The notes below the pieces were generated by a model that worked only from the letters and a program-made list of their open reading frames with translations, did no database searches and was not told the origin of the DNA. Both the position numbers and the translations under genes were made by a program. Of a stretch of 64,000 nucleotides of DNA, positions 8,933 to 58,214 are shown piece by piece; position 1 is the first letter of the stretch, and each line of letters starts with the position of its first letter. This DNA is from Octopus bimaculoides (Eukaryota), in contig NC_068990.1 in assembly GCF_001194135.2 (NCBI RefSeq), positions 45,209,915 to 45,273,914 of the forward strand, given 5' to 3'.

Positions 8933-9058
8933 GTAATAAAGAAACCTGTGCAGTTGTGGTTACAATCAATTGAGGGACAGAACGTCAAGCACCATTTAAA
9001 TGACCCTTTGGTGGGAGACACACGAGAACTTGTGAAAGCTATGGTGGACACTTTTAAG
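8933..9058 (+). CDS. TSC2: Tuberin exon w7
   Basis: TTGCAG acceptor; VIKKPVQLWLQSIEGQNVKHHLNDPLVGDTRELVKAMVDTFK; donor AAG|GTAAGA; 126 nt. Confidence 0.92.
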
Positions 9059-21756: not shown

Positions 21757-22030
21757 GTAAGTTGATAGTTCTTTTCCAATTAAATAATTTAATAATAATG
21801 AAGATGATGATGATGTTGATGATATATCCAAAATATAGATCTGACTAAATTATTGATTAACTTAATTGTTCTTAATGAGATAGACGGTAATACGTAGGTA
21901 AATGATCTATGTAGTAACAAATTTTTGAATTTGTAAGAAAAAAATTCTCATAAATAATTCCTATTACCTTAGAATTTAAATTTCAATAAAATTTGTTTTT
22001 TAATTATAATTTTGTGCTTGTGTTTTGTAG

Positions 22031-22173
22031 AGTTTGAGTAGATATGTACAGCAAGAATTTGAAGAAAATGCCAAGCAAAGATTAAAGAACTGTGATACTA
22101 GTCACAGCCCAGGGAGCAGTAACAGTGCCATCCGAGCTCGTGCAGGAAGTTGTGAATCTGCAGATAAAACAAG
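22031..22173 (+). CDS. TSC2: Tuberin exon w16 (contains RxRxxS motif)
   Basis: TGTAG acceptor; SLSRYVQQEFEENAKQRLKNCDTSHSPGSSNSAIRARAGSCESADKT(R); donor AG|GTAAGA; 143 nt. Confidence 0.92.
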
Positions 22174-33490: not shown

Positions 33491-33710
33491 NNNNNNNNNN
33501 NNNNNNNNNNNNNNNNNNNNNNNNNNNNNNNNNNNNNNNNNNNNNNNNNNNNNNNNNNNNNNNNNNNNNNNNNNNNNNNNNNNNNNNNNNNNNNNNNNNN
33601 NNNNNNNNNNNNNNNNNNNNNNNNNNNNNNNNNNNNNNNNNNNNNNNNNNNNNNNNNNNNNNNNNNNNNNNNNNNNNNNNNNNNNNNNNNNNNNNNNNNN
33701 NNNNNNNNNN
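33491..33710. other. Assembly gap (220 N); 10-N gaps also at 29633-29642 and 59584-59593
   Basis: N runs. Confidence 1.
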
Positions 33711-46961: not shown

Positions 46962-47220
46962 GTCAGTTCTTTACATTCACTGTTTTCCTTTTTGATGCTT
47001 TAAATGAGTTGTAAGAATATTATACTTTGTTACTGTATTGAGTATGTTTTCTTCTTGTTTGTAAACCCAAGTTTGTGTCTATATAAAATTTATGAATATG
47101 GGTGAGTGTGTGTATGGACAGGATGAAGTGGTGAGAAAGGATCTTCAAATGCTGGACCCCACTGAGGAAATGACAAGGGACTGGGAGATGTGGCGATTTA
47201 CTGTACATGAAAAGACACGT

Positions 47221-49805
47221 CATCATCATTTAGCATCTGTTGTCCATGCTGGCATGAGTTGAACAGTTTGACTGGGCTGGCACACTGGAACGCTGCACCA
47301 GATTCCAGTCTGATTTGGCATGGTTTTCTACAGCTAGATGCCTTACCTAATGCCAACCACTCCGAGAGTGTAATGTGTGCTTTTACGTACCACTGGTACA
47401 GGTGCCATTTGCATGACATCAGGGTCCGTTTATGTACCACTAGCACAGGTGCTAATTTGTGTGACACCAGTATCTACCATGACTGCGATTTTGCTCACCT
47501 TGATGGTTCTTCTTCTCAAGCATGACATAATACCAAAGATCTTAGTTGTTGCCTCCATGAGGCCCAACACTCAAAAGAAACTCAGCCACTTTGCCTCCGT
47601 GTCGCCCAACGCTCAAAAGGAACTCAATCACCTTGCCTCCATGAGGCCCAACACTTGAAAGGAACTTAGTTACTTTGCCTCTGTGAGGTTCAACACTCAA
47701 AAGGAACTCAGCCACTTTGCCTCTGTGAGGCCAAACATTCAAAAGATGTTCTTTATGTGCCACCATGCACTTGGCTTGACAAGTCCTCTCAAGCACAGCA
47801 CATCGCCAAAGGTCTCGGTCACTAGTCATTGCTTCTGTAAGGCTTAAAGTTCACCACCTATTCACATGTCTTCTTGGGTCTACCTCTACCACAGGTTCCT
47901 TCCAAAGTTAGAGATCGGCACTTCTTTATACAGCTGTCCTCGTCCATATGCATCACATGACCATACCAATACAGTCATTTCTCTTGCATACCACATCTGA
48001 TTTCTCTTATGCCTAACTTTTCTCTCAAGATGCTTACACTCTGTTGAACATGCACACTGACATTGCACATCTAGCAAAGCATACTGGCTTCATTTCTTGC
48101 AAGTTTATGCATGTCCTCGGCTGTCATAGCCCATGTTTCACTGTCATGCAGCATTGCTGTTTGCACACAGGCATCAAACAATCTGCCTTTCACTCTGAGA
48201 GAGAGGCTCTTTGTTGCCAGCAGGGGTTGGAGCTCTCTGAACTTTGCTCAGTCTGATCTTATTCTTACAGCTACACTCTCAGAGCATTCACCTCCACTAC
48301 TAACTTGGTCACCTAGATAACGCAAGCTATCTACTATCTCTAGCGTGCTCCCTCTGGCAGTTGATGGAGTCTATTTTCTGCACATTTTCAGTGTTTATTG
48401 TACCTGTGTACCTTCCACATATAAAAGTTAGTCTCCCTGTTAACCTTCCTATGATGTTGCTGCCCCTTTTATATATCCAAAACTTAGACTGGCTGCATCT
48501 TATGGAGTTTCTGCCTACACCTTTTCTACAGATTGAGCAGGTCCATCTACTTCAAGGGATTTGTGATTTATCTGCCTTCCTACTTATTAAGACTTTGGTT
48601 TTTGCTAGGATAACTCTAAGGCCTTTTAATTCTAGACCTTGCTTCCATACCTGGAACTTCTTCTCTAGTTCAGCTATTCAGCTATAAGACCAAGGTCATC
48701 AGCATAGAGGAGCTCCCAGGAGCAGCCTCTCTTGAATTCTTCTGTTATTGCCTGGAGGACTTTGATGAACAAGAGGGGGCTGAGGACTGATCCTTGGTGA
48801 ATCCCTACTTGTACCCTGAATTCTTCGCTGTACTCATTGCCCACTTTCACCTTACTGGTAGCATCCCTGTATGAGGCTTGTATGGCTCTCACCAACCACT
48901 CATCTATCCTTAGTTTCCTCTATGATCACCAGATAAGGAATCAGTGGGGTCTCTGTCAAAAGCTTTCTCCAAGTCAACAAAAGCCAAATACAGAGGTTTA
49001 TCATTGGCTAGGTATTTCTCCTGAAGTTGCCTTACCAGAAATATAGCATCAATGGTGCTTCTACCTGGCACAAAACTAAACTGCATCTCATCTAGACTAA
49101 CTCCCTAATTAATTTGGCTATGACTCTCTCTCTCTAACTTTCATCACCCGATCCAACTATTTGATACTTCTGTAATTATTTCTGTCTAAGGCATCACCTT
49201 TATCTTTGTAGCAGTTGACTATGGTGCTGCTACACCAGTCATTGGGTATGACTCCTTCATGAACCACCTGATTTACAATACAGGTGGCTTGACCATAACC
49301 CAAACTGCCAGATATTTTAAGCATCTCAGCAGGGATTCCTGATGGGCCAAGAGCTTTCCCTTTCTTCATATCCTTAATTGCTTTATCTACCAGGATTTGG
49401 CAGGCTCTCTTCCTCTCATTCATTCTCCACATTCAGCAGTCTTTCATAATGGCATCTCTAAGCCTCTTTCTTTGCAGATTCATTAAAAGCAGGTGCACCA
49501 TCATCCATGCAGACACATTTCTCTCCTATGACATCACAGTTTTCTCTCACACACTGTCTTGCAATCTGAAATAATTCAGTTCTTTTGTCTTCATGACACT
49601 GAACATAGACAAACTTCTTCTCTGCTTTTCCTTTGGCTAGATATACCTGTCTCCTAGCTTCCCTTCTGGCTGTCTGATACAGTTCCCTGTTGCCCCTACT
49701 CTTCCAGGCCTGTTTCTTTGCTCTAATGGCCCTGTCTACAGTATTGTTCCACAACCACATTACCCTATGTGGAAGTCTGTTTGCTCACAAACTCTAACTT
49801 ACCAT
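47221..49805 (-). mobile_element. 5'-truncated RTE-clade LINE (~2.6 kb) with decayed RT ORF
   Basis: ORF pieces WLWNNTVDRAIRAKKQAWK, KKGKALGPSGIPAEMLK, QVGIHQGSVLSPLLF...WELLYADDL, post-RT region, 3' UTR and (GAT)n tail at 47221; stops and frameshifts. Confidence 0.93.
47549..47745. repeat. 42-bp tandem repeat, ~4.7 copies, inside the LINE 3' region
   Basis: TTGCCTC recurs at 47549, 47591, 47633, 47675, 47717. Confidence 0.92.
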
Positions 49806-50718: not shown

Positions 50719-50806
50719 AGTGAATTCAATTTTGTAAACATTATCATAGAACCGTTGGACTGTAACACTAATGCAGTCAAAATAGTTACCAGAGAAAACC
50801 AAAATG
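50719..50806 (+). CDS. TSC2: Tuberin exon w26 (GAP domain)
   Basis: TTGCAG acceptor; SEFNFVNIIIEPLDCNTNAVKIVTRENQN (TSC2 GQFNFVHVIVTPLD); donor G|GTAAGA; 88 nt, phase 0/1. Confidence 0.96.
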
Positions 50807-51444
50807 GTAAGAATTTCATGGTTTTCTCTTCGATTATTCTTGTTAAATTTGATTTTTTTTTTTTCTTAAATGAATTATACCAGATTCATATCATTATATT
50901 CTTTTATAAATTATGGTTTGCTTGTACTTTTTCAACTTAACCATTGGTAGCCTTAACAGTAATAGTAATAACTAGCAGTGGTAAATAAGAATAATAGTGA
51001 ATAACTAAAAATTCCATGGTTATTTTGAAAACTGTAAGATGATTTGAGGTTTATAAAGAACTATAGAATATGTAATTTGTTTTGAAATATATTTTTTCTG
51101 AAACAAATGATTTTTGAGTTAATGAAAAAGTTCATTTGTGCTGTAATGAAGATATAGTCGCAGGAGAGAACATCTTTGAACGTTATATCCTTTGTTATAC
51201 ACCTGTCACTCTTCTACCTTGAAGATTGTTATCTGTTAGTTTTAACTGGCATATCTGTCTATTATTCTGCTATGGTATGACTATCCTGTAGAGCATAGGT
51301 TCTCAAAGTGAGCGTTGCCGCCTCTCCAGGTAGGCGCTGGTGCTAAAGGGGGCAGTGGCAGGGGGACAGTAGAGAAAAAGGAGGCATTGGGAGGAAGGTA
51401 GTAGATTGGGAGATGCTATGAATTTATTATAATATTATTATAGT

Positions 51445-53118
51445 CATCATCATCGTCATCATTTAATGTCTTCTTTCCATGCTAGCATGGGTTGGATGAT
51501 TTGACTGAAGACTGGCGAACCAGATGGCTGCACCAGGCTTGAATCTGATCTGGCAGAGTTTCTACAGCTAGATGCCCTTCCTCACGCCAACCACTCAAGA
51601 GTGCAGTGGGTGCTTTTACGTGCCACCGGCATGAGGGCCAGTCTGGCGGTACTGGCAACGGCCACGCTCAAATGGTGTTTTTTATGTGCCACCTGCATAG
51701 GAATCCGTCCAGCAGCACTGGCAATGACCTCCCTCGAATGTTTTGTTCACGTGCCACCGGCACAAGTGCCAGTAAGGCGACACTGGTAATGATCACACTC
51801 AAATGGTGCTTTTTACGTGCCACTGGCATGGAAGCCTGAGAGCTGCTCTGGCAGTGATCACGCTTGGATGGTGCTGTTAGCGACTGGCACAGGTGCCAGT
51901 CATCGAATTTGGTTCAATTTCGATTTCACTTGCCCCAACAGGTCTTCGCAAGCAGAGTTTAGTGTCCAATGAAGGAAGGTTGGGATGGGTGCCAGTCGTC
52001 GAATTTGGTTTGATTTCGATTTCACTTGCCTCAACAGGTCTTCGCAAGCAGAGTTTTGTGTCCAAAGAAGGAAAGGTACGCATAAGTGGGCTGGCTACAC
52101 CCCTGGTAAAGGCCACGGGTTATGGTCTCACTTGTCTTGCCGGGTCTTCTCATGCACAGTATATTTTCAAAGGTCTCGGCCACTAGTCATTGCCTCGGTG
52201 AGGCCTAATGTTCGAAGGTCGTGCTTCACCACCTCATCCCAGGTCTTCCTGGGTCTGCCTCTTTCACAGGTTCCTTCAACTGCTAGGGTGTGGCACTTTT
52301 TCACATAGCTATCCTCATCCATTCTCGCCACATGACCATACCAGCACAATCATCTCTCTTGCACACCACAACTGATGCTTCTTAGATCCAACTTTTCTCT
52401 CAAGGTACTTACACTGTTGAGTATGCACACTGACATTACACATCCATTGGAGCATACTGGCTTCATTCCTTGTGAGCTTACGCATGTCCTCAGCAGTCAC
52501 GGCCCATGTTTCACTGCCATGTAGCATGGCTGGTCGTACACATGCGTCATACAGTCTGCCTTTTACTCTGAGCAAGAGGCCCTTTGTCACCAGCAGAGGT
52601 AAGAGCTCTCTGAACTTTGCCCAGGCTATTCTTATCGTAGAAGCTACACTTTCAGCGCACCCTCCCCCGCTACTGACTTGGTCACCTAGGTAATGGAAGC
52701 TATCAACTACTTGTAGTTTTTCTCCCTGGAAGGTGACAGAAGCTGTTCTCTGCACATTTTCAGTGTTTATTGCTCCTGAGCATTTACCACATACAAAACG
52801 TAACTTCCTAGTTAACCTTCCTTTGATATTACTGCACCTCTTATGTGTCCTTAGCTTGCACTGGGTGCATCTTATAGAGTTTCTACCTACGCCTTTTCTA
52901 CAGATCGAGCAGGGTCATCTACCTGAAGGGGTTTGTGGTTTGTCTACCTTCCTACTTATTAGGACTTTGGTTTTAGTTAGGTTGACTCTAAGGCCCTTCA
53001 ATTCTAATTTTTGCTTCCACACCTGAAACTTCTCCTCTAGTTCTAATAGTGACTCAGCAATTAGAGCAAGGTCATCAACATAGAGGAGCTCCCAGGGGCA
53101 TCCTGTCTTGAATTCCTC
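51445..53118 (-). mobile_element. 5'-truncated RTE-clade LINE (~1.67 kb) nested in the hAT MITE
   Basis: PWELLYVDDL, VVDSFHYLGD, KGRLYDACVR.AMLHGSETW, WYGHVARM...GRPRKTWDEVV; (GAT)n tail at 51445; TATAGT flanks at 51439-44 and 53119-24. Confidence 0.92.
51895..52080. repeat. 96-bp tandem duplication in the LINE 3' UTR
   Basis: GCCAGTC[A/G]TCGAATTTGGTT...GGTCTTCGCAAGCAGAGTTT units start at 51895 and 51991. Confidence 0.9.
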
Positions 53119-53867: not shown

Positions 53868-54168
53868 ATTAAACCTTGGGAGAGGCATTATGCCGGTAAT
53901 AAATGCACGCACTGGTTCAGTCCTTTATTAATTTATATAGTTTTTTGTTAAATTATTTCATTGCACTCTTGCAATCTCTTCAGTAACTTGTCTCTCCACT
54001 TCCATTTATTTTGAATAAATAAATAAATAAATGGAAGTAGAGAGACAAGTTACTGAAGAGATTGCAAGAGTGCAATGAAATAATTTAACAAAAAACTATA
54101 TAAATTAATAAAGGACTGAACCAGTGCGTGTGTTTATTACCGGCATAATGCTTCTCCCAAGGTTTAAT
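53868..54168. repeat. 301-bp near-perfect palindrome (144-bp arms, 13-nt loop)
   Basis: 53868-54011 is the reverse complement of 54025-54168 with 4 mismatches by manual comparison, all transitions. Confidence 0.97.
54049..54089 (+). ncRNA. Minimal type I hammerhead-ribozyme-like motif (mirror copy on - strand at 53947-53987)
   Basis: GTTA-CTGAAGA-G-ATTGCA-AGAG-TGCAAT-GAAA-TAATT-TAAC: stem I GTTA/TAAC, CUGANGA box, 6-bp stem II, GAAA box. It lacks the C that normally pairs with G10.1, and stem III is minimal. Confidence 0.4.
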
Positions 54169-55291
54169 TGTATTTCTTTCAACACACGTATCCACGTCAA
54201 GAATCTTGCACACGAAATAATAATATGCCCTGATGCATATAATAATAATAAGCCCAGGCAGTGTCTCTCATGGCTTTTGATCTTAATTGATTGGAAGTGT
54301 TATCATGTACATGTTTCGTTTTGGTATAAAAGTTGGGCTACAGCAAATATTCTGCTCAGTACCACAGATTTGCTTGCCAGTTGCTTGACCTTAACCAGTT
54401 GAGCATGTCTCTTAGTGGCTGACAATATACGCATCTCTGATCATGAGCAGAAGTAGTGGAGGAGCATCATAATCATATGCTGAGGAATTCTTTGGATTTG
54501 AATAATTCACTTCTGGAAACATATGTGTTTTGTTCATGGTCCTTAAACAAACTTTATTCAGGGACCTTTTGAGCAGAATGGGCTACTCGACCTGAAGAAA
54601 ATTCTAACTGATCCCCACCTGCAAGGTCATGTGCTGTTTTATTAATGAGATCACCATATCGCACATGTATGGTTCTGATGCATGTACCTGGTGTACATTA
54701 GACAGGTAGTCATGATGGGTATATTGGGCTTCATATATTTGTACCCCTGTGTCACTTCAATAGCGTGTGCTGCTCTCTCACTCAATAATAAAGGCTTCAG
54801 ATTTTGTCTGAGGCCAATCATTTCAAGGGGAAGGTATTAGATGATTCCATCAAACCCAATTTTATTTTCCGTTTGGTTTTTACATGTTCTACTACTGCAT
54901 CCTTGCTAACATAGTTCTATTCCATTTGCACAACAAAAATTTTGACATCTCAAAAAAATAACTGGAAAGTGAGTCTAACAATTTTTGTGTTTTTAAAATT
55001 ACTGAAAATGATTTTGCTGATGTAATTACTTTAGTTTCCACACCCATTCTTGGATCAAGATGCTTGCTACACTAGTAAAATTCCATAAAATAAAAATGAT
55101 AAAAATAAATGACTTTATGGATTATTTTCTATTGCAATTTCAGTAATTTACAATTCTGACTGTAAATATCTTCTTTATTTTAGTATATATGTAATGTGTG
55201 TGTTATATATAATATAGCTTTATTTTGATATCTAATGTAAATGTAATAAGTTAACTAACAATTGTTTTTCTTGTTTTCTTTCTTCTCTTAG

Positions 55292-55318
55292 CTGCTGTCA
55301 AAGACGTTATAACGTCTG
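55292..55318 (+). CDS. TSC2: Candidate 27-nt symmetric (phase 1/1) microexon w27 adding AAVKDVITS
   Basis: ACTAAC branch-like motif at 55254-55259, ~30-nt pyrimidine tract, TAG acceptor, TG|GTAAGA donor; no stop in the required frame. No homology or transcript support available here. Confidence 0.65.
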
Positions 55319-55367
55319 GTAAGATTCTACATTTTTATTTTTATTTTTACTTCTCTTACTTTATCTA

Positions 55368-55750
55368 CTGTATATACTTGTAGATAGGTCACACCAGTGG
55401 ATAGGTCGCACCCTAAGTTTGGGGTTGTCAAAGTAGGTATTTGCGGTTGACTTGCAGATAGGTCGCACTATAATCTGGGGAGTTACATGGCCCTTTTTTT
55501 AATGTAAATGCAACTAATATTTGTTAGATATTTTCAAATATTCACCTTTATTTCAAAACTTTGCTTACAAATATTAAGACATTTTCATGGAAGTGACTTT
55601 ATGAAAGTAATCTAATTGATAAATCAACTCAACTACTGATACGTTGCTGTCTACTTCAGTTCCTTGTGATATTGAGTGGATAGGTTGCACTCCTGATTTG
55701 TATTGAAATTTTTGGTAAAAAAAGTGCAACCTATCTGTGAGTATATATGG
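55368..55750. mobile_element. pogo/Tc2-like MITE
   Basis: TA-flanked imperfect TIRs CTGTATATACTTGTAGATAGGTCACAC / GTGCAACCTATCTGTGAGTATATATGG, with internal repeats of the ATAGGT[CT]GCAC motif. Confidence 0.75.
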
Positions 55751-56843
55751 TATTCAGTTGTTATTTTTAAATCAAAACCTATTTATAAAGTTTTTTTCTT
55801 TCTTTTCAAAGTCTTGGTCACAAGTAGAAAAGCAGTACTTGTGGGTGTTTACAGGGCATTTGAAAGTCGTGAGAGGAAGAGATAGAGTTATGTCAGATTG
55901 AAAACCTGGCTTGAATACTTACAACAGAATAGATTCCACTAAAGGCACATTTAGTTACGTGGTGGTGATTGTTGTTTAGTCCCAGGTCATCTCTGATCTG
56001 GCAGATTTATAGTCAAAGGCACTCCCTGTGTGCAAAACCTGTTTTTTTCTTTTATTTTTGTTTATCAAACTTAGAGTATTTAGAACTAGATTGCCTGATG
56101 TTCTGTTTCTAAATGGAGAGATTTTATCGCTGTTTTAAGCAGATCAAGTGATGGTGTACAGGTGTATTCATTAACTTGCTATTGCAGTTAACTCGTTAGC
56201 ATTCAGATTACTCTGTCAAATGTAATGCTTATTTATTCACATTGTTTTAATTTAATCATGCATTATCTTGTAACTTCAAGATTTTGGTGATGTGAGTCTG
56301 CTTATTTTTAAAATGACACTGTAGGGTAAGTGTGAGAGGCCAGATCTGGATGATTTGAACATAAAAGAAGTAGAATATTTGAGACTGACACAGCCAGTTT
56401 AAATGATAAAAGGCTAACTATACATCAGTCCTGATTCAACAAAAAAACTTTAATCGTAAAGTATTCCATCTGTGACATCTTGTCATTTATTCAGGCCCAG
56501 TACTGGATAATTTTTAGATTTATTCTTACACGTATAGGATGTAAATTGAGTGAGACCTGGCTGCTGTTTCTAGCAAACTAAGTAGCCACCTGAAGGTTCC
56601 CCTCATTGAATGGTTTGACAGGAGCCAGAGGACTGCAGCAAGCTCTACTGTCTGCTTTGGCATGGTTTCTGAATGCCCTTCCCAGCACCATCCACTTTAA
56701 AGATAAACATACTGGATACTTTTTATATGACACCAGTACAATTAATTAAAGACAATTTTTTTAATTATATAAATACTCTCATTTTACTATCATGTTCCTC
56801 TCAGGAAATAATTCCATTTCACTTATTGTTTTCTTTCTCTTAG

Positions 56844-56932
56844 ATATTGCTGAATCTTTGGGACAAGAATCCAAGACAATTTCCGACGATAAATTAGCTG
56901 CTTTGGTTCGGCTAATGGCAATCCACTGTAAT
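56844..56932 (+). CDS. TSC2: Tuberin exon w28
   Basis: CTTAG acceptor; (D)IAESLGQESKTISDDKLAALVRLMAIHCN (TSC2 [20 protein letters not shown]); donor GTAAGT; 89 nt, phase 1/0. Confidence 0.95.
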
Positions 56933-58016
56933 GTAAGTATAAGAGTTAGTAAATAATTTTGTTTTGGAGTATGAATGAAATATATACTTTCTCTCTTTGT
57001 GGTACATGCTGAAATGCTCTCTTGCACCCCAGATTAAGAATCAATAGATTAGAGTATCTGCTTCATTTATTCAAATTTTTGTTCAGTATACAATATACAA
57101 AATATCAGATATTGGATGAAAACTAAAGAAATTTGAATTAACTTGGAAAATAATCATACATTCATTTGTCATGATATGATTATCGGTTATCTACATTCTG
57201 TTTTTAGTTTTTAACTCTTTCATGACTATATGTCTAATGAATCATATTGGATATGTATTTCAATTAGTTTTGAAAATAATCAAACATTTCGGAAGGATTT
57301 AGTAACTTAACTTTATCATAATTTGGTGGTTGTTTGGACCACTAACTTCAAAGATTTTGAAATAAAACTAAAATAGAATTAAAATGACTGGCTTTCATTG
57401 AGATAATTATCATCATCGTTTAACGTCCACTTTCCATGCTAGCATGGGTTGGACGATTTGACGGAGGACTGGTGAAACCAGGTGGCTACACCAGGCTCCA
57501 ATCTGATTTGGCAGAGTTTCTGCAGCTGGATGCCCTTCCTAACGCCAACCACTCCGAGAGTGTAGTGGGTGCTTTTACATGCCACCGGCACGAAGGCCAG
57601 TCAGGCAGTACTGGCAACGGCCACTCTCAAAATGGTGTTTTTTACGTGCCACCTGCACAGAAGCCAGTCCAGCGGCACTGGCAACGATCTCGCTTGAATG
57701 ACTTTTCATGTGCCACCAGCACAAGTGCCAGGAATGCAATGCTGCGGCCCAAATGCCAGGAAGGTGACGCGGGTAACGATCACGCTCGAACGGTGGTGCC
57801 ACCACGATTTCGCTTGCCCCAACAGGTCTTCGCAAGCAGAGTTTAGTGTCCAATGAAGGAAATGAATCTTTAAAATGAGTGGTCTTTGTATCATTGGTCA
57901 GATGTGGTCTAGTGGATTAATATCAAAAAGCTTAAACAAGCATATACAATTTTATTAACTTTTGCATACAAAAATAAGAAAATATATATATTTACTATAC
58001 AATTACTTTATTTCAG

Positions 58017-58214
58017 TTGGCATCTATGGTCCTTTGGAGACAGAAAAGTAACCCTAAAGATCCTTTTGCATCTAATTGGTTGGAACGTCTAAGACACATG
58101 AAACGACTACGTAGTAAAGTAATGGAGAAATTGAAAACAGCTGCCGACGAGAGGGCTGGCTATGATCGGACTGAAGCAAAAGTTTTTCATGAAGATTTCA
58201 CGGACTATTCCTGA
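58017..58214 (+). CDS. TSC2: Tuberin terminal coding exon w29
   Basis: TTTCAG acceptor; LASMVLWRQKSNPKDPFASNWLERLRHMKRLRSKV...FHEDFTDYS* (TSC2 YPSKWIARLRHIKRLR and C-terminal EDFTEFV); TGA stop. Confidence 0.96.
   Translation: MASMVLWRQKSNPKDPFASNWLERLRHMKRLRSKVMEKLKTAADERAGYDRTEAKVFHEDFTDYS

Follow-up and report, generated by a model that had tools for sequence, protein, structure and literature searches.

The TSC2 gene and the exons around the studied intron

The window, that is the whole stretch of 64,000 nucleotides of Octopus bimaculoides DNA under analysis (contig NC_068990.1, positions 45,209,915 to 45,273,914 of the forward strand), carries on its plus strand a gene that we identify from its sequence as TSC2 (tuberin). 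Two constitutive exons of this gene bound the intron of interest. The upstream exon (50719–50806, +) encodes SEFNFVNIIIEPLDCNTNAVKIVTRENQN, ends with AAT G|gtaaga in phase 1, aligns to human TSC2 and shows 72% nucleotide identity to an mRNA of a relative (contig L004, see below). The downstream exon (56844–56932, +) begins at the phase-1 acceptor ttag|AT, encodes (D)IAESLGQESKTISDDKLAALVRLMAIHCN, is followed by the donor gtaagt and is 73% identical to the same mRNA at the nucleotide level. The last coding exon (58017–58214, +) encodes LASMVLWRQKSNPKDPFASNWLERLRHMKRLR...DFTDYS followed by the stop codon, and served as the query that recovered the molluscan orthologues. The spliced C-terminus matched the human tuberin chains 7dl2_A and 9ce3_A with E = 1e-57 and the Pfam family Rap_GAP (PF02145) with 161 bits. 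KKRHIGND, the catalytic Asn-thumb motif, was invariant across the TSC2 alignment; the human thumb residue is N1643 (PMC13478581).

Some 23 additional exons of TSC2 were mapped along the plus strand of the window. The probe was a human TSC2 sequence; it served for exon finding only, and each match was judged by its own alignment score. Two more exons, at 8942–9038 and 22029–22168, were missed by the human-protein probe and were revealed by alignment of mRNA L004 (87% and 79% nucleotide identity, respectively). Human TSC2 has an intron at the studied position as well, presumably a short one. Since c.5068G, the first base of the D1690 codon, is the final base of human exon 39 (PMC12480980), the position and the phase of this intron are common to window and human TSC2. 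A preliminary description of the locus, made from the DNA letters, had stated a human intron at this site without a corresponding exon; this proved correct, exon 39 ending at c.5068 (PMC12480980). Human TSC2 thus has only an intron where window TSC2 carries a 27-nt exon.

Coordinates and splice signals of the candidate microexon

The preliminary description had proposed a frame-preserving microexon from an ACTAAC motif, a pyrimidine tract, TAG, 27 nt and GTAAGA, located between the donor at 50806 and the acceptor at 56844, both of phase 1. Each of these elements was found in place, and both exon junctions confirmed the surrounding phases. The branch-point-like motif ACTAAC lies at 55254–55259 (+), with 55258 as the putative branch A; 33 nt separate this A from the G of the acceptor, without any AG in between. 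By itself this motif is weak evidence, because CTRAY occurs within 50 nt of the acceptor in just 4 of the 20 real acceptors of TSC2 in the window. The polypyrimidine tract at 55262–55289 (+) consists of C or T at 26 of its 28 bases and includes four UCUU motifs; it is directly followed by the acceptor TAG, which ends at 55291. The 27-nt segment CTGCTGTCAAAGACGTTATAACGTCTG (55292–55318, +) is free of stop codons and has phase 1 on both sides. Its donor GTAAGA (55319–55324, +; 7.8 bits) is preceded by CTG, and the same intron hexamer is present at the donor of the upstream exon. The segment is therefore flanked by canonical AG and GT dinucleotides and a pyrimidine tract at usable strength, as a spliced cassette microexon would be.

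The reading AAVKDVITS results from the G of the upstream exon plus CTGCTGTCAAAGACGTTATAACGTCTG, while the last G of the microexon opens an Asp codon that is finished downstream. With inclusion, the translation runs ...TRENQN, AAVKDVITS, then DIAESLGQESKTISDDKLAALVRLMAIHCN; skipping restores GAT (Asp) at the junction. Because phase 1 is present on both sides, the frame is kept either way, and translation of both spliced versions gave TRENQN-AAVKDVITS-DIAES and TRENQN-DIAES, just as had been predicted. A second good acceptor, ctctcag|GAAATA, was noticed 39 nt before the true acceptor at 56844; the intervening sequence (56805–56843) is open and in frame, and its retention would lengthen the protein by GNNSISLIVFFLL. 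This acceptor is probably a decoy, the open frame arising from translation of the pyrimidine tract.

Several other features of the window were recorded. A MITE-like element at 55366–55752, whose 29-nt inverted ends show 76% complementarity and which holds GATAGGTYGCAC four times internally, starts 48 nt downstream of the microexon donor, indicating that the downstream intron is not tightly constrained. At 53913–54124, a near-perfect hairpin of ~210 nt resembled, on both strands, miRNA precursors of many unrelated families, with no match reaching the gathering score of its family; most likely it represents an inverted-repeat (MITE-like) intronic element rather than a miRNA gene. The last intron contains a GC-rich (~55%) insertion (57306–57861) that is absent from genomic contigs of a congener (L001–L003, 85–88% nucleotide identity). 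Similar GC-rich stretches at ~47200–48700 and ~51300–53000 share recurring ORF-like translations (...LAEFLQLDALPNANHS...), which suggests a recently active repeat family. Microsatellites of the TA/CA type are very abundant across the whole window, and N runs (assembly gaps) at ~33530–33700 and ~59580 lie within microsatellite-rich sequence.

Splice-site strength, composition and uniqueness

With a generic splice matrix, the acceptor ranked 13th among 3486 AGs and the donor 22nd among 3803 GTs on the plus strand of the window, and no other AG–GT pair at most 60 nt apart matched both scores on either strand. Fifth-order Markov simulations yielded 0.2 such pairs per 64 kb; requiring a length divisible by three lowered this to 0.067, and an open phase-1 frame as a further condition left 0.027. 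Gene-specific matrices were trained on 20 acceptors and 18 donors of window TSC2, with leave-one-out scores for comparison. On this scale the microexon acceptor (14.5 bits) exceeded all 20 real acceptors, and the donor equalled the median of the real donors. The combined score of 22.2 bits was the best of 207 phase-compatible open candidates in the intron, the runner-up reaching 12.2. The splice sites of the microexon are thus at least as strong as those of the neighbouring constitutive exons.

Composition pointed in the same direction. The GC content is 44% compared to 29% in the flanks, and the 27 nt contain two CpG dinucleotides; the observed/expected CpG ratio in window TSC2 is 0.51 for exons and 0.22 for introns. 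The in-frame codon log-likelihood ratio of 2.93 bits falls within the top 4% of intronic and the top 20% of exonic windows, corresponding to a density ratio of ~3. A second-order Markov exon-versus-intron score ranked the segment among the highest 1.5% of intronic 27-mers (highest 0.25% within AT-rich context) and peaked exactly on the microexon. Splice signals alone lent moderate support to a real exon, and signals plus composition would have made it roughly an even bet, because microexons are rare per intron; the question was settled by comparative data.

The 27-mer and all of 54500–56200 are unique in the window except for one 47-nt match elsewhere, which ruled out a repeat or transposon origin of the microexon. 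Recursive splicing was rejected as well, since GT is not the first dinucleotide of the exon and joining the exons does not regenerate a 5′ splice site. We found no intronic RNA gene overlapping the microexon, and among the phase-compatible candidates of the same intron there was no convincing second microexon, such as an equivalent of the 15-nt bivalve exon described below.

Transcripts of a cephalopod-grade relative

Used as a query against 1.84 billion representative proteins, the last TSC2 exon retrieved P0018, a TSC2 of 1735 residues from a cephalopod-grade relative that shares 64% identity with window TSC2 (abalone and mussel: 37–39%). This protein is coded by eight uninterrupted Logan contigs (assembled mRNAs) of 5.5–6.8 kb from at least four sequencing runs (SRR8281680, SRR29271478, SRR7369732, SRR29271462). 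Its junction reads ...TKESKK-ADAKEVITA-DIAEALG, with ADAKEVITA in place of AAVKDVITS. In mRNA L004, exactly 27 nt lie between the orthologous exons, and 19 of the 27 are identical to the window microexon, which is the same level of conservation as in the flanking exons (72% and 73%). Contigs L004–L007 bear the 27 nt at the junction, demonstrating that the orthologous exon is present in mature mRNA, and all eight contigs represent the included form. The genomic contigs L001–L003 of the congener end ~1.25 kb short of the microexon.

Inserts in bivalves and abalone

TSC2 of the bivalve Potamilus (...LQAKE-VPFKDHITT-DIAEILG) contains a nine-residue insert at exactly the same junction, and VPFKDHITT shares K, D, I and T with AAVKDVITS. 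The two inserts align with a BLOSUM62 score of 16; a fraction of 7e-4 of the open intronic 9-mers in the window score as well. A further bivalve mRNA (L010) encodes VPFKDSITT by the 27 nt TGCCTTTCAAAGACAGTATTACAACAG, of which 17 are identical to the window microexon, including TCAAAGAC. Two bivalve mRNAs from the same or a sister species (L008 and L009) carry an extra 15 nt, ATTTGAGTGAATCAT, just before the 27 nt. This addition alters the split codon from Val to Leu, so that DLSES-LPFKDSITT replaces VPFKDSITT. L008 (at about 590–610) and L010 are otherwise near-identical, the difference being the 15 nt. ATTTGAGTGAATCAT has the appearance of another phase-1 microexon, shorter still, at this bivalve site. 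The bivalve isoforms were assembled from runs SRR18452364, SRR18748344 and SRR18452402.

A related case was found in the abalone Haliotis rufescens, where the computed RefSeq models X1 (XP_048258608.1, 1773 aa) and X2 (XP_048258610.1, 1762 aa) of tuberin-like differ solely by the 11 residues EPYEFKGQIST at the junction. As in the window, it is the same gene with the same phase logic and the same insertion point, after ...TLQTKE and before DIADILG, and the motif K-x-x-I-S-T is related to K-D-V-I-T-S. The abalone insert is longer, however (11 residues or 33 nt, compared to 9 residues or 27 nt), and its N-terminal part has diverged. The first residue of every molluscan insert (A, A, V, V, D, E) is encoded by a codon that begins with G, as a phase-1 split codon with an upstream exon ending in G demands. 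From the isoform pair, the mRNA pair and this codon rule we infer that the insert probably corresponds to a separate exon in bivalve and abalone, too. The genes span 106 kb in Potamilus and 252 kb in Haliotis.

Taken together, the molluscan inserts follow the pattern x-x-[VAF]-K-[DEG]-x-I-[TS]-[STA]. The annotated TSC2 proteins of Lingula, Owenia, Tubulanus, ant, spider, lobster and human have no insert, a set of outgroups that includes brachiopod, annelid, nemertean, arthropod and human TSC2. Annotated TSC2 P0010 has 21 additional residues, VNKELLKALQTLLSFYFHSTQ, a few positions downstream of the site (equivalent to 56844–56870 of the window), which looks like intron read-through in the gene model rather than a homologous exon. 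The molluscan sequences were reached only by an N-terminal query and by the query with the last exon: the 67-residue junction peptide gave no protein matches, the C-terminal 234 residues returned only distant TSC2s, all lacking the insert, and two metagenome scans, one for a degenerate pattern of the microexon and one for a pattern of the upstream exon, were negative. The preliminary description had named conservation in cephalopods and other molluscs among its checks, and orthologous or homologous inserts were indeed detected in the relative, in two bivalve lineages and in Haliotis. Its proposal of a lineage-specific exon, by contrast, did not hold in the cephalopod-specific sense, because the exon also occurs in bivalves and a gastropod and is thus common to three molluscan classes.

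Position in the GAP domain

In the translated construct the insert comprises residues 169–177, while the Pfam Rap_GAP envelope extends from 36 to 236. The microexon therefore lies inside the GAP domain of TSC2, as anticipated. The structural placement was taken from a predicted model of the homologue P0002 (local pLDDT 60–86), in which the strand NRVFIDCK precedes the junction and the short helix ELDEPLGHVK comes after it; a short strand and then the long C-terminal helix complete the order. According to this model the insert sits in a loop at a strand-to-helix junction. Loop length at this site varies among eukaryotic homologues, and the skipped form already corresponds to the normal loop length of other TSC2s. 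A preprint on the Rheb-bound TSC complex names as Rheb contacts the catalytic helix α3, the β2–β3 loop and the helices αN and αC leading into and out of the GAP domain (bioRxiv 10.64898/2026.07.14.738392); the insertion loop is absent from these named elements. It is located ~17 residues before the long C-terminal helix of the model, which we take to be αC. An effect of the insert on Rheb-GAP activity is thus possible, albeit purely inferred.

Alternative explanations

Three other readings of the locus were considered. The segment could be a chance pseudoexon, i.e. a T-rich tract and a fortuitous GTAAGA in an AT-rich intron that are never spliced in. Decoys of like strength can arise, with an estimated ~0.03–0.09 expected per 64-kb window; one minus-strand pair even outscored the candidate in summed score with the gene-trained matrix, and the in-frame alternative acceptor at 56805 illustrates how easily open decoys form. 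A pseudoexon does not account, however, for orthologous 27 nt at the exact junction in the mRNAs of the relative, conserved like the flanking exons, nor for the homologous bivalve peptide (p = 7e-4) or the exon-like content scores, and we regard this reading as very improbable. Somewhat more probable, but still unlikely, is a cephalopod-lineage-specific, neural-enriched microexon of the kind regulated by SRRM4/eMIC, a reading that takes up the lineage-specific, possibly neural isoform of the preliminary description. The exon conforms to the length range (3–27 nt) and frame preservation of neural microexons; with its 27 nt, symmetric phase and insertion into a loop of a signalling protein it resembles them. 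Neural exons confined to single lineages also arise repeatedly in the same genes, and some of them, as in DOCK3/4 and spg, lie in the catalytic domain of a GTPase regulator (bioRxiv 10.64898/2026.09.05.749416). On the other hand, the exon is shared with bivalves and a gastropod, its acceptor is very strong rather than weak, and there is neither a UGC within 150 nt upstream of the acceptor nor a GCAUG within 300 nt on either side. A motif scan bore out the earlier remark that the pyrimidine tract lacks UGC: the nearest upstream copy lies at –159, and the sole one nearby is inside the microexon (positions 2–4). UCUU motifs are present in the tract, but are usual in any such tract. A neural role is hence unsupported by the sequence, given the missing UGC and GCAUG motifs, the strong splice sites and the exclusively included form in the mRNAs of the relative.

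The most serious competitor is a real exon that is effectively constitutive in cephalopods, always included and without an isoform switch, so that the nine residues would be a plain part of the protein. In its favour, the splice sites equal or exceed those of the neighbouring constitutive exons, and the mRNA contigs of the relative run unbroken through the exon in eight of eight cases, which would be unlikely for a de Bruijn assembly with abundant skipping. An exact skipped version of P0018 was not found in a collection of 15 billion proteins, although a search restricted to exact full-length matches is weak evidence of absence. Against this reading, the RefSeq models of abalone include a skipped isoform at the same site, and the bivalve varies in its use of the extra 15-nt exon, marking a splicing-variable spot in molluscs. 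We consider constitutive inclusion a strong contender, with a probability slightly short of even.

Proposed interpretation

The conclusion that carries the least doubt is that 55292–55318 is a genuine 27-nt coding exon of TSC2, older than the split between cephalopods, bivalves and gastropods; we hold this to be very likely. The inclusion of this exon in O. bimaculoides would follow from orthology and splice signals. The exon lies within an old phase-1 intron, which in human TSC2 interrupts the Asp1690 codon, and with phase 1 on both sides it behaves as a frame-neutral module that can be included or skipped. Inclusion adds AAVKDVITS between the last long β-strand of the Rap-GAP fold and the short helix DIAExLG, some 17 residues ahead of the C-terminal helix. 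In O. bimaculoides the exon is probably included for the most part, given the strength of its splice sites and the fact that the relative yielded the included form only. For regulated skipping in this species we see roughly an even chance, the remainder being an effectively constitutive exon. Across molluscs, the site is variable in splicing, because both forms are annotated in abalone and a second tiny exon is used variably in the bivalve; the variants comprise a 27- or 33-nt exon and an additional 15-nt exon in the bivalve.

TSC2, the product of a growth-control gene, forms the catalytic part of the complex that chiefly restrains mTORC1. It is conceivable, though rather unlikely at present, that the site represents an old mollusc-specific alternative-splicing module in the GAP domain whose isoforms are unequal in Rheb-GAP activity or in how the GAP domain is allosterically coupled to the helices of the dimerisation domain and to TSC1. 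If true, molluscs would hold a splicing-level control of mTORC1 that other animals lack. No alternative exon inside the TSC2 GAP domain came up in the literature searched, and among the listed papers that mention both microexons and TSC2 none dealt with this site. The cephalopod, bivalve and gastropod classes diverged several hundred million years ago. The conserved core K-[DE]-x-I-[TS] with the same length and phase across the three classes, optional in at least one of them, therefore implies that a surface loop adjoining the C-terminal helix region has been under selection. The two forms would provide a natural isoform pair for probing this part of the GAP domain, and for work on how splicing evolves the exon is a clean case of an ancient microexon confined to one clade. 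In practical terms, the TSC2 gene model of the O. bimaculoides genome should contain the microexon.

Comparison with known systems

The bilaterian neural microexons controlled by SRRM4/eMIC resemble the window exon in that they measure up to 27 nt, are symmetric, insert into loops of signalling proteins and show old conservation; the window exon differs from them by the lack of a UGC enhancer, by its strong acceptor and by its limitation to molluscs. NF1 exon 23a is a 63-nt in-frame alternative exon in the GAP-related domain of neurofibromin that occurs in vertebrates and alters GAP activity, as measured. Like the window exon, it preserves the frame and is located in the catalytic domain of a tumour suppressor with GTPase-activating function; unlike it, it belongs to a RasGAP fold with an arginine finger and has a measured effect. 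Human TSC2 itself contains exons 25 (129 nt) and 31 (69 nt), both of them centrally placed and preceding the GAP domain. Both are in-frame alternative exons that are dispensable for basic function (PMC4843954). Microexons within a catalytic domain of small-GTPase regulators, in this case DHR-2, are also present in DOCK3/4 and Drosophila spg (bioRxiv 10.64898/2026.09.05.749416). Their hosts are guanine nucleotide exchange factors, however, while TSC2 is a GAP, and these exons arose convergently in insects and vertebrates, whereas on present evidence the window exon had a single origin within the molluscs.
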